Below are positions 29,254 to 52,675 of a stretch of DNA of 64,000 bases, piece after piece; the stretch's first letter is position 1, and every line of letters begins with the position of its first letter. This DNA comes from Pseudomonas aeruginosa PAO1 (GTDB taxonomy: Bacteria > Pseudomonadota > Gammaproteobacteria > Pseudomonadales > Pseudomonadaceae). The translations under genes and the position numbers were made by a program. The DNA lies in the NCBI RefSeq assembly GCF_000006765.1, contig NC_002516.2; one strand, written 5' to 3'. A model generated the notes under the pieces. That model searched no databases. It worked only from the letters and a program-made list of their open reading frames with translations, and was not told the origin of the DNA.

Positions 29254-29258
<5 letters not shown>

Positions 29259-29440
29259 GGCGAATAACCACTCGCGGTTATCCGCCGGGCCATGCTCCGC
29301 AGAAGCGGCGGATAGCGCCGCTGGCGCTGTTCGCCCTACCTCACGACTCCCACCGGTAGGGCGAATAACCGCTCGCGGTCATCCGCCGGGCCATGCTCCG
29401 CAGAAGCGGCGGATAGCGCCGCTGGCGCTATTCGCCCTAC
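29254..29440. repeat. Array of four GTAG-family REP palindromes (two tandem inverted REP pairs)
   Basis: Unit GGTAGGGCGAATAACC..GGTTATCCGCC-spacer-GGCGGATAGCGCC..GGCGCT(G/A)TTCGCCCTAC at 29254-29340 and 29355-29440 (101 bp period). Confidence 0.9.
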
Positions 29441-49994: not shown

Positions 49995-50458
49995 GCGCGA
50001 ACCTGCACGGCCTGGAGTTCCCCGACGGGCTGTTCTACGCCCCGGACTACAACCTGTGGTTGCGCGAGGAAGTCGACGGCAGCCTGACCCTGGGCCTGAG
50101 CGCCTACGGCTGCGCGCTGTATGGCGAAATCTTCGCCTTCACCCCCAAGCGCGACGGCTGGCACATCGAACGCGACCGCAGCTTCGGCGTGGTCGAGTTC
50201 GCCAAGGCTGCCTCCTCGGCCCGCAGCCCGTTGGCCGGGACCCTGCTGGCGAGCAACCCGGCGGTGGTCAAGCGCCCGGCGCTGATCAACCGGGATTGCT
50301 ACGGCGAGGGCTGGATGGTACGGCTGCAACCGGACGACTGGGCCTCGGCGCGGAGCGCGTTTCTCCAGGGAGACGCGGCGCGGGAGGCATTCGCCGAGCG
50401 CATGCGCCTGGATGGGTTCGATCCGCAGCATCCAGGGGTGCAGGCACTGGACTTCTGA
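49991..50458 (+). CDS. Glycine-cleavage H-like lipoyl-carrier protein
   Basis: GVVEFAKAAS (lipoyl Lys), SPLAG and LINRDCYGEGW motifs. Confidence 0.87.
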   Translation: MSANLHGLEFPDGLFYAPDYNLWLREEVDGSLTLGLSAYGCALYGEIFAFTPKRDGWHIERDRSFGVVEFAKAASSARSPLAGTLLASNPAVVKRPALINRDCYGEGWMVRLQPDDWASARSAFLQGDAAREAFAERMRLDGFDPQHPGVQALDF

Positions 50459-50493
50459 GACTCCCGGGTTTTACCCGCACCCCGCTCGCGGAA

Positions 50494-50520
50494 GGCGGAT
50501 AACGCCGCTGGCGTTATTCG
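50494..50520 (-). repeat. 3' portion of a REP split by the IS insertion
   Basis: Minus strand CGAATAACGCCAGCGGCGTTATCCGCC; the missing 5' part GGTAGGGC lies at 51899-51892. Confidence 0.9.
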
Positions 50521-50577
50521 TATATGGACTCCTCCCGGTTTGCCAGTGTTTGTCTTGATTTCAAACCTGTGTACGAC

Positions 50578-50729
50578 TGCATCCGTATATCCGGCTTCAT
50601 GGAGTGGTGTTGCAACTCCCGAGCCCTGATGAAATGCGCGCCTGCATACCTGATCGCCCTAACGGCTTTGCTTCACTGCAGCAGGGAGCCCACGTATAAA
50701 CCAGGTTTCATGCAGGCCGGTTCGACCGG
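50578..50729 (-). ncRNA. Predicted bridge/seek guide RNA core in the IS 3' non-coding end (exact ends unknown)
   Basis: 5' hairpin plus two stem-internal-loop modules carrying target matches (TTATACG, TAGGGCGA) and donor matches (CATTTCAT, ATATAC). Confidence 0.75.
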
Positions 50730-50795
50730 TTCGTCATCATTGTCATTCACTGAGCAATCGTGGTGGATGTTTCAACTACGGTGTGGCAGGAACGC

Positions 50796-51812
50796 TCAAC
50801 CGGGCCGGTAGCATGTCTCCCGGCTGAGTAAAGCCCAAAGGATCCGGGCATTCTTGTTGGCCAGGGCAACGGCGACGACATTGGCAGGACGCCGTTGCAG
50901 CAGACCTTGCAGCCAGCGGCTGCGGGCATCGGTCTTGTTGGCGCAACAGCGCACGACTGCACGGGCGCCATGGATGAGCAAGGTCCGCAAGTAGGTATCG
51001 CCGCGCTTGCTGATGTTGCCCAAGCGCTGCTGCCCGCCCGTGGAGTGCTGCCGTGGCACCAGGCCCAGCCAGGCCGCAAACTGGCGGCCCGTGCGGAATT
51101 GCCGTGCATCACCGGCGGATGCCGCCACCGCGCTGGCGCTGATCGGGCCGATGCCTTCCACCGCCAGCAGGCGCTGGATGCGGGCATCGCCACGTACGTG
51201 AGCCTGAATCTGTCGCTCCAGTCGAGCGATGCGCGCCTCCAGCGTCTGCAATTCATCTTTCAATTCACGCAACAGCTCGCCCATCGGGGCCGGCAAGGGC
51301 GCCGGCTCGGTAGCCATGACCGTTTCGAGCAAGGCCATCGTCGCCGCTCGCCCACGTCGAGTCGCGATCAGCCCGAACTCACCCAGCAAGCCACGCACCT
51401 CATTGCACAACGCCGTGCGGGCCCGCACTAGACGACTGCGCACCCGATGCATCGACTGCACGGCCTGCTGCTCTGCGCTCTTCACCGGGACATAGCGCAT
51501 GCTCGGACGACTGGCGGCTTCGCAGATCGCCTCGGCGTCGTGTGCATCGTGCTTGTCACCCTTGACGTAGGGTTTTACGAACTGCGGTGCGATCAGGCGT
51601 ACCGTGTGGCCCAGCTCCCGCAACTCGCGCGCCCAGTAGTGCGCACTGCCGCAGGCCTCCATCGCCACCAGGCACGGCGGCAGTTGGCGAAAGAAATCCC
51701 GCACCTGTGCCCGCTTGAGTTGGCGACGACATACCACATGCTCGTGACGATCAACGCCGTGCACCTGGAATACTTGTTTTGCCAGATCCAGACCAATGCG
51801 ACTAAGGTTCAT
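50796..51812 (-). CDS. IS110/IS1111-family DEDD transposase/recombinase (338 aa)
   Basis: GLDLAK (D), AMEACG (E), KHDAHDA (D,D), GIGPISA HhH and GLVPRQHSTGG (catalytic Ser loop); purine-rich RBS before ATG 51812. Confidence 0.96.
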   Translation of the reverse strand: MNLSRIGLDLAKQVFQVHGVDRHEHVVCRRQLKRAQVRDFFRQLPPCLVAMEACGSAHYWARELRELGHTVRLIAPQFVKPYVKGDKHDAHDAEAICEAASRPSMRYVPVKSAEQQAVQSMHRVRSRLVRARTALCNEVRGLLGEFGLIATRRGRAATMALLETVMATEPAPLPAPMGELLRELKDELQTLEARIARLERQIQAHVRGDARIQRLLAVEGIGPISASAVAASAGDARQFRTGRQFAAWLGLVPRQHSTGGQQRLGNISKRGDTYLRTLLIHGARAVVRCCANKTDARSRWLQGLLQRRPANVVAVALANKNARILWALLSRETCYRPG

Positions 51813-51946
51813 GCTGACTCCCCCTCCGGGACTTGTGGCTGCACCATTAGTCTGGCGCTTGACGCCGTAGGAGGGAGGAGTCCATTTCATTGCCCTACCC
51901 CAGCTCTCCATCGCCGCCAATCTCCCGCATATCCCCGGAGTCCGCC

Positions 51947-52675
51947 ATGTCCTCACCCCAACCGCCCCGCTTCGACGGCCAACGCTGGAGCAACGCCGAC
52001 GACGACCGCATCGAGGTGCTGCCTGCCGACCCCGCCTGGCCACAACACTTCGCCGCCGAAGCCGAGGCCATCCGCACGGCGCTGGCGCTGCCCGGGCTGG
52101 GCATCGAGCATGTCGGCAGCACCGCGGTGCCCGGGCTCGACGCCAAGCCGATCATCGACATCCTCCTGCTGCCGCCGCCCGGCCACGATCCGCAGCGGCT
52201 GGTAGCCCCGCTGGAGGGCCTCGGCTACCAGTTCTGGCGCGAGAACCCGAACACCCAGCGGATGTTCTTCGTCAAAGGCATGCCGCCCTTCGGCCATGGC
52301 CGCACCCACCATGTCCATGTCATGCCCCTGGCCCAGGCCGACCGCTACCTGCTGTTCCGCGACTGGCTGCGCAACCACCCCGACGACGCCCGCCTCTACG
52401 CCGAAACCAAGCACGCCCTGGCCCGCCGCTACCCCACCGACCGCGAGGCCTATACCCGTGGCAAGGACGAGGTCGTCGCAAGGATTCTCGGCCGGGCGCT
52501 GGCGGCGACGCGGCACCCAATGATACAGAGTGGCCTGGTAAGGGGAGAACGCGAAATGCACGCCAGGGAACTGCGTGAAACGCTGGTCGCCGGCGCGGAA
52601 TCGACGCCAGGCGGCCCCGCCGATACAGCCTATTTCGAGTCGCTGCGCAGCCGGGTAAGCAAGCCCCAGGACTGA
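51947..52675 (+). CDS. GrpB-family protein with a ParD-like C-terminal tail
   Basis: IEHVGSTAVPGLDAKPIIDI, HHVHV, FRDWLR and YTRGK motifs. Confidence 0.88.
   Translation: MSSPQPPRFDGQRWSNADDDRIEVLPADPAWPQHFAAEAEAIRTALALPGLGIEHVGSTAVPGLDAKPIIDILLLPPPGHDPQRLVAPLEGLGYQFWRENPNTQRMFFVKGMPPFGHGRTHHVHVMPLAQADRYLLFRDWLRNHPDDARLYAETKHALARRYPTDREAYTRGKDEVVARILGRALAATRHPMIQSGLVRGEREMHARELRETLVAGAESTPGGPADTAYFESLRSRVSKPQD

Follow-up and report, generated by a model that had tools for sequence, protein, structure and literature searches.

An intact ISPa11 inserted precisely into a REP palindrome, with a predicted guide RNA downstream of its transposase gene

The segment 50521–51892 of the window (the whole 64-kb stretch of DNA that was analysed) is an intact copy of ISPa11, which splits a REP palindrome at GTAGGG^CGAATAAC (the caret marks the point of insertion or junction here and below). 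We place a probability of about 0.95 on the account as a whole, according to which an intact ISPa11 with an RNA-guided DEDD/serine recombinase inserted precisely into the REP. The REP specificity of ISPa11 was published in 2006 and its RNA-guided mechanism in 2024, and the observation itself is therefore already known. Target choice in this family falls to a seekRNA, or bridge RNA, and does not depend on the protein by itself (Siddiquee et al., 2024, PMC11187229; Durrant et al., 2024, PMC11208160).

The element, left unnamed in the original prediction, is identified as ISPa11 because its transposase is identical at 338 of 338 residues to the ISPa11 protein in supplementary file 6 of Siddiquee et al. 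(2024), its 278-nt non-coding region aligns end to end with the one published there, with few differences, all at garbled PDF text, and its left flank is that of "ISPa11-1" in the six-copy PAO1 alignment of Tobes and Pareja (2006; PMC1525189). The ends, CAATGAAATGGACTCC... and ...GGAGTCCATATA, agree with Additional file 2 of the latter study. By these matches the window belongs to a P. aeruginosa chromosome of the PAO1 type. All features tested against the six PAO1 copies (Tnp, non-coding region, ends, REP target, insertion at GG^CG, lack of duplication) were alike, and no difference was found in the window copy. A megablast search of PLSDB returned no plasmid copies of the element; its sole match was 111 bp in an Aminobacter IS110-family gene.

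Table 1. Features of the ISPa11 copy and its target in the window.
Feature	Coordinates	Strand	Sequence or basis
Complete ISPa11 (1372 bp), IS1111 group of the IS110 family	50521..51892	-	Empty alleles; CP047067 copies
Left part of the interrupted REP, target -7..-1	51893..51899	-	GGTAGGG
Left-end 7-nt terminal extension	51886..51892	-	CAATGAA; its first base, C, is common to element and target
Left sub-terminal inverted repeat	51873..51885	-	ATGGACTCCTCCC
tnp, DEDD/serine transposase (bridge recombinase), 338 aa; stop codon 50796-50798	50796..51812	-	Pfam; published protein
Structured seekRNA/bridge RNA scaffold (predicted), downstream non-coding region	50623..50739	-	Folding and covariation in 25 relatives
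T guide (predicted), 5' side of internal loop	50693..50700	-	UUUAUACG; slot is the reverse complement of the relatives' right flanks
B guide (predicted), 3' side of internal loop	50654..50662	-	UUAGGGCGA
Candidate donor-binding segment	50629..50636	-	CAUUUCAU; complementary to left-end bases 3-10 (ATGAAATG)
-35-like promoter half, completed only in the circle	50541..50546	-	CTGGCA
-10-like hexamer across the joined ends	50522-50521 + 51892-51889	-	TA^CAAT
Right sub-terminal inverted repeat	50524..50536	-	GGGAGGAGTCCAT
Right-end 3-nt terminal extension	50521..50523	-	ATA
Right part of the interrupted REP, target +1 onwards	50494..50520	-	CGAATAACGCCAGCGGCGTTATCCGCC

Read on the minus strand, the junctions are GGGGTAGGG^CAATGAA-ATGGACTCCTCCC on the left and GGGAGGAGTCCAT-ATA^CGAATAACGCCAGCGGCGTTATCCGCC on the right (Table 1). 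The inverted repeats are perfect over 13 bp and, as originally predicted, sub-terminal, being set back by 7 nt at the left end and 3 nt at the right. The 13-nt repeat has exactly two matches in the 64-kb window, at 50524–50536 on the plus strand and 51873–51885 on the minus strand, against 0.06 expected by chance. Non-coding DNA amounts to 80 nt upstream of tnp versus 278 nt downstream. According to Siddiquee et al. (2024), the sub-terminal repeats of IS1111 elements are accompanied by extensions of 7 bp on the left and 3 bp on the right, targets are not duplicated, and earlier reports of duplication arose from misplaced ends. The window copy shares the repeats and extensions of this group, the longer downstream non-coding region, the absence of duplication and the order of the guides (see below).

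Empty sites were sought through the GrpB-like protein encoded next to the element (51947–52672), which was matched by exact sequence in public assemblies. One assembly (L001) carries the element and is identical to the window. In nine further P. aeruginosa assemblies (L002–L010) the element is absent, and the genes for a GCV_H-like and the GrpB-like protein are adjacent. Removing 50521–51892 from the window yields ...GGCGTTATTCGCCCTACC..., which is the same, base for base, as the intergenic sequence of these nine assemblies, the REP included. The insertion is precise: it added exactly 1372 bp and produced no target-site duplication. Because the empty alleles equal the window without the 1372 bp, there is no duplicated target and a single base is ambiguous. 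The empty site has this base (G on the plus strand, C on the minus strand) only once, and it may be counted with either side, so that 50521–51892 and 50520–51891, both proposed in the original prediction, are equally valid coordinates. The nine empty alleles thus uphold its central claim, an insertion into a REP with a 1-nt shared core and no duplication. Its assignment to the IS1111 layout with sequence-specific insertion agrees with the Pfam domains, the downstream non-coding region and the precise empty alleles.

Intact REPs of the same type are found in the window at 29255, 29356, 29428 (minus strand), 40334 and 43517. The expectation that removal of the element rebuilds a REP like those placed at 29254, 40333 and 43516 was borne out by the empty alleles and by the REPs at 29255, 40334 and 43517. 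The region 29254–29440 contains two tandem units, each a convergent REP pair about 100 bp apart, and resembles a BIME cluster; three of its four REPs are within one mismatch of the ISPa11 target GTAGGGCGNATAA, and these three are unoccupied.

Further copies were found by exact transposase look-up, and not among the relatives described below, in which the P. aeruginosa representative genome is absent. The 6.26-Mb genome CP047067, of the PAO1 type, holds six copies, none of which differs from the window copy (100% identity over 1372 bp). They all lie at GTAGGG^CG[A/C/G]ATAAC in one orientation relative to the REP, with A at position +3 in four sites, C in one and G in one; the window copy follows the same GTAGGG^CGnATAAC rule and orientation. 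Insertion at unrelated sequences or multi-base direct repeats, either of which had been named in advance as evidence against a precise, site-specific insertion, was seen in none of them. This agrees with the earlier report that six of six ISPa11 copies in PAO1 split the REP between bases six and seven without direct repeats (Tobes and Pareja, 2006), and with Table 1 of a 2026 review (PMC13604230), which lists GTAGGGCGaATAACCGC as the target of ISPa11 and GG^CG as its insertion point.

The transposase has the domain layout of the IS1111 group, an N-terminal, RuvC-like DEDD domain (Pfam DEDD_Tnp_IS110, PF01548, E = 2e-16) followed by a C-terminal Tnp domain with the putative catalytic serine (Transposase_20, PF02371, E = 9e-25). 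A phmmer search against the PDB matched residues 187–327, in the C-terminal domain, to 8wt6 (IS621, E = 7e-8) and 9t56 (ISCro4, E = 6e-9), and by this similarity the protein is homologous to the IS621-type recombinase. D9, E52, D89, D92 and S257 are invariant in a protein alignment across 16 relatives and, by their motif, are the putative catalytic residues. The alignment leaves out L021 (Pseudomonas sp. 30_B), the closest relative outside P. aeruginosa at 80% identity, which has an in-frame stop in tnp; no sub-terminal repeat pair was found in this locus, and it is possibly a decayed copy. The tnp frame is open for 77 codons upstream of the ATG (50796–52043, minus strand), across the left end and into the flank. 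This is probably of no significance; read-through into tnp from outside would be in frame.

Relatives were collected as transposase matches in species-representative genomes, of which 80 loci with 48–80% identity were kept. Of these, 42 are complete elements, sharing the geometry of 7 nt, repeat, repeat and 3 nt and having very different flanks; 25 of the 42 were used to align the RNA region. The predicted fold of the downstream region, running from 50739 to 50623, has a basal stem and a small hairpin, then a pair of stems enclosing an internal loop of 8 nt per side, and lastly a distal hairpin. The limits in Table 1 are those of the conserved fold and not of a mapped transcript. Because the fold energy by itself is weak (thermodynamic z = -1.15), the argument for a structured RNA is built on covariation. 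Thirteen of the 21 consensus pairs show compensatory changes, and 94.5% of cells are paired, compared with 76% in column shuffles, none of 500 shuffles reaching as high a value. Sliding the partners by 1–3 columns lowers the pairing to 34–47%, and cells changed on both sides number 103, where 31 are expected. A scan of 50300–52100 against Rfam release 15 at E <= 1 matched no bridge RNA or seekRNA family and gave one chance match outside the element. Two forms of the ISPa11 seekRNA have been published, a short one of 96 nt (Siddiquee et al., 2024) and a long one of 172 nt, and both map to the non-coding region downstream of tnp. The window copy itself may be transcribed and active.

The two sides of the internal loop carry the predicted guides. 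The T guide is complementary to the top strand of the target at +1, +2 and +4 to +7 (CG-N-ATAA), with its A facing the variable REP base at +3, and has two mismatches in its eight positions. An exact longest-match search missed the T guide in ISPa11 because of the mismatch at +3, and it was recognised instead by its position in the aligned RNA. The B guide contains TAGGGCGA, which equals the top strand from -5 to +3, and it would therefore pair with the bottom strand. The guides (50700–50693 and 50662–50654) overlap at +1 to +3 of the target, the T match lying 5' of the B match. Siddiquee et al. (2024) give the same arrangement for the 96-nt ISPa11 seekRNA: its two matches overlap in the target, and the top-strand match is the more 5' of them. 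ISPa11 is also one of six elements with a predicted bridge RNA in Durrant et al. (2024), who place this RNA in the right end for IS1111 elements. Across the six occupied sites the target varies at +3 alone, where A, C or G is found, and this is the base faced by the A of the T guide; the guide looks as if made to disregard this polymorphic REP base.

In the 25 relatives both guides occupy fixed positions in the RNA and change together with the flanks. A relative with the target ccacag^cggacatt, for example, has the guides CCACAGCG and AAUGUCCG, while the target gcgcg^agtgggcgg goes with GCGCGAG and CCGCCCACUCG, and gccaa^tcaactag with GCCAAUCA and CUAGUUGA. On average, the junction-spanning match between a loop and its own target is 5.5 nt long for the B loop and 4.0 nt for the T loop. 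With targets permuted 2000 times these means are 1.8 nt (maximum 3.6) and 1.6 nt (maximum 3.2), respectively. As far as such comparison of guides and flanks goes, the covariation in the ISPa11 clade reproduces the published principle that the RNA chooses the site.

The left end of ISPa11 is shared by elements in L031, L057 and L130 and in the short metagenome contigs L104, L111, L117, L118, L123, L126 and L128. They are inserted at GCGTAATC^CG, where another REP-like palindrome, GATTAGCCGAAGGCGTAATC, has its tail, and their B guide is altered to UAAUCCGA. They are cases of natural retargeting to the REP of another host. ISEc11 has reportedly already been retargeted by changing only the RNA guides and the donor flanks.

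Before 2024, the prevailing view was that recombination in this family involves the protein only, the transposase recognising the sequence or hairpin of the REP and the non-coding region having no bearing on the target. REPs are indeed palindromes able to form hairpins, and other REP-seeking elements, such as IS1397 of the IS3 family, have no known guide RNA (PMC1525189). We nevertheless regard this view as very improbable. Relatives whose transposases are 50–80% identical use quite different sites, and both loop strands have changed to match them. TnpPa11 co-purifies with RNAs encoded downstream of tnp, and in ISEc11 the non-coding region is essential (Siddiquee et al., 2024). Furthermore, the opposite arm of the same REP (GAAGGCGGATAA) is left unused, which fits recognition of the sequence by a guide and not of the shape of a hairpin. 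It could also be supposed that the REP halves belong to the element, either as REP-like ends or because they were captured together with it, since every copy is flanked by the same GTAGGG and CGNATAAC. This supposition, to which we give practically no credence, is refuted by the empty alleles, in which nine strains have an uninterrupted REP at the exact locus; moreover, the REP beyond +2 differs between copies whose 1372 bp are identical, and the window also contains other REPs of this type that are unoccupied. Precise, RNA-guided insertion of ISPa11 into a pre-existing REP is the reading preferred here.

On the donor side, CAUUUCAU overlaps or forms the 3' strand of the basal stem and, judged by inspection, changes with left-end positions 6–7 in relatives. 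It may bind the donor, close the RNA or do both, the donor-binding role being suggested by its complementarity to the left end. The basal stem itself (UGAUGA/UCAUCA, 50627–50739, minus strand) is similar to CAATGAA at the left end and to the complement of that sequence, and in relatives it changes when the left end does; it may conceal donor recognition. When the ends were joined in silico, CTGGCA-N18-TACAAT was formed, with 9 of 12 consensus matches and an 18-nt spacer. A scan of the linear element for promoters and terminators found none, and no sigma-70-like promoter in particular. Junction promoters have been reported for the family, and circle formation by ISPa11 is cited (Siddiquee et al., 2024); by analogy, the joined ends of ISPa11 would form such a promoter.

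In the mechanism that we propose, the DEDD/serine transposase would act as an RNA-guided recombinase, and the 278-nt region downstream of tnp would be transcribed into the structured seekRNA or bridge RNA. Each side of its internal loop would pair with a different strand of the REP head. For the B guide, UAGGGCGA, this would be the bottom strand at -5 to +3; the T guide, UUAUACG, would pair with the top strand at +1 to +7, skipping the variable base at +3. The element would leave as a circle in which ATA and CAATGAA abut, and the circle junction would make a promoter for tnp and the RNA. Recombination of the circle with a REP would then take place between G(-1) and C(+1), an exchange point at which donor and target have only the C in common, which would leave no duplication and one ambiguous base. 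Within this scheme, the co-purification of RNA with TnpPa11, the formation of circles and the requirement for the non-coding region (in ISEc11) are taken from the literature, while the identity of ISPa11, its precise insertion, the use of the same site, the conserved fold and the covariation of guides and flanks come from the present analysis.

The one-base overlap bears on how the strands are exchanged in RNA-guided insertion. In nearly all relatives the element and its right flank begin with the same base (C/c, T/t, A/a), and the second base matches only in some lineages (TG/tg, TC/tc, AG/ag). In ISPa11 the second base is A in the donor and G in the target; donor CA (51891–51892) and target CG (50519–50520) share only the C and do not form an identical core dinucleotide. 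Both guides cover +1 and +2 in ISPa11 and in the relatives. Among the few exceptions to the shared first base is L037, a Lysobacterales MAG, whose right flank starts with T where the first base of the element and both guides specify C; this flank was probably point-mutated after insertion. The top strands of IS621 are cut just 3' of its CT core (PMC13626964), and by this analogy +1/+2 would be the core of ISPa11.

An exchange like that of IS621, equally guided by RNA, would use a 2-nt staggered core at +1/+2 (CG/CA), the heteroduplex at +2 being fixed later by replication or repair. It would explain why both guides cover +1/+2, as LTG and RTG cover the CT core of IS621 (PMC13626964), and a dinucleotide common to donor and target does exist in several related lineages (TG/tg, TC/tc, AG/ag). 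A heteroduplex, however, should give two types of junction. The metagenome contigs contain 30 loci with a normal left end, 13 of them gtaggg^CAATGAA, and no match to the alternative left junction (TAGGGCGATGAAATGG or TAGGGCGATGAAATGGACTCC), which is likewise absent from the six genomic copies. We therefore consider this scheme unlikely for ISPa11. A core at -1/+1 is disfavoured because no left flank ends in A among the same 30 metagenome loci. Since only one junction type was seen, albeit in a small sample, an overlap of at most one base or an exchange of one strand pair is favoured by these data. We advance only tentatively, and with considerable doubt, the suggestion that strand exchange in the ISPa11 clade departs from the 2-nt staggered scheme of IS621, either through an overlap of at most 1 nt or through the exchange of a single strand pair followed by replication. 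The latter would also fit the failure to recover a re-joined empty site after excision of ISEc11 (Siddiquee et al., 2024).

The other IS1111-group elements compared (IS4321/IS5075, ISEc11, ISKpn4 and ISPst6) are built like ISPa11, with a DEDD transposase, sub-terminal repeats of 11–13 bp, 7-nt and 3-nt extensions, a long non-coding region after tnp that encodes a seekRNA, a circle with a junction promoter and no target duplication. They differ in their guides and hence in their targets, which include Tn21-family inverted repeats, a linear 12-mer and attC sites; left end and target have four bases in common in ISEc11, compared with one in ISPa11. IS621 of E. coli, from the IS110 group of bridge recombinases (cryo-EM structure 8WT6 and others), has a homologous recombinase, also targets a REP, and has a guide RNA with an internal loop whose sides pair with opposite target strands and overlap at the crossover. 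Unlike ISPa11, it has sub-terminal repeats of only 2–3 bp and encodes its bridge RNA upstream of the gene in the left end; in the window copy the structured RNA lies downstream, and only 80 nt are available upstream. In IS621 an invariant CT occurs in donor and target alike and is found at both boundaries of the inserted element, whereas ISPa11 has CA in the donor and CG in the target. ISPpu9 and ISPpu10 of P. putida KT2440 are likewise IS110-family elements that use one fixed position in the REPs of their host, but with reported 2-bp direct repeats (PMC1525189), another REP, other guides and other transposase lineages. IS1397 and ISKpn1 of the IS3 family share the specificity for REP/BIME palindromes; in contrast to ISPa11 they have DDE transposases, target duplications, no known guide RNA and an unrelated chemistry.

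ISPa11 is among the reference IS1111 elements for RNA-guided recombination, and to this one more copy adds nothing new. The mismatched second core base together with the uniform junctions bears on how strand exchange in IS1111 compares with that in IS621, as a minor point and not as a finding. For the window, the annotation is settled: ISPa11 accounts for the 1372 bp, the REP that it splits is the target, and what lies downstream of tnp is not junk but a gene for a guide RNA.
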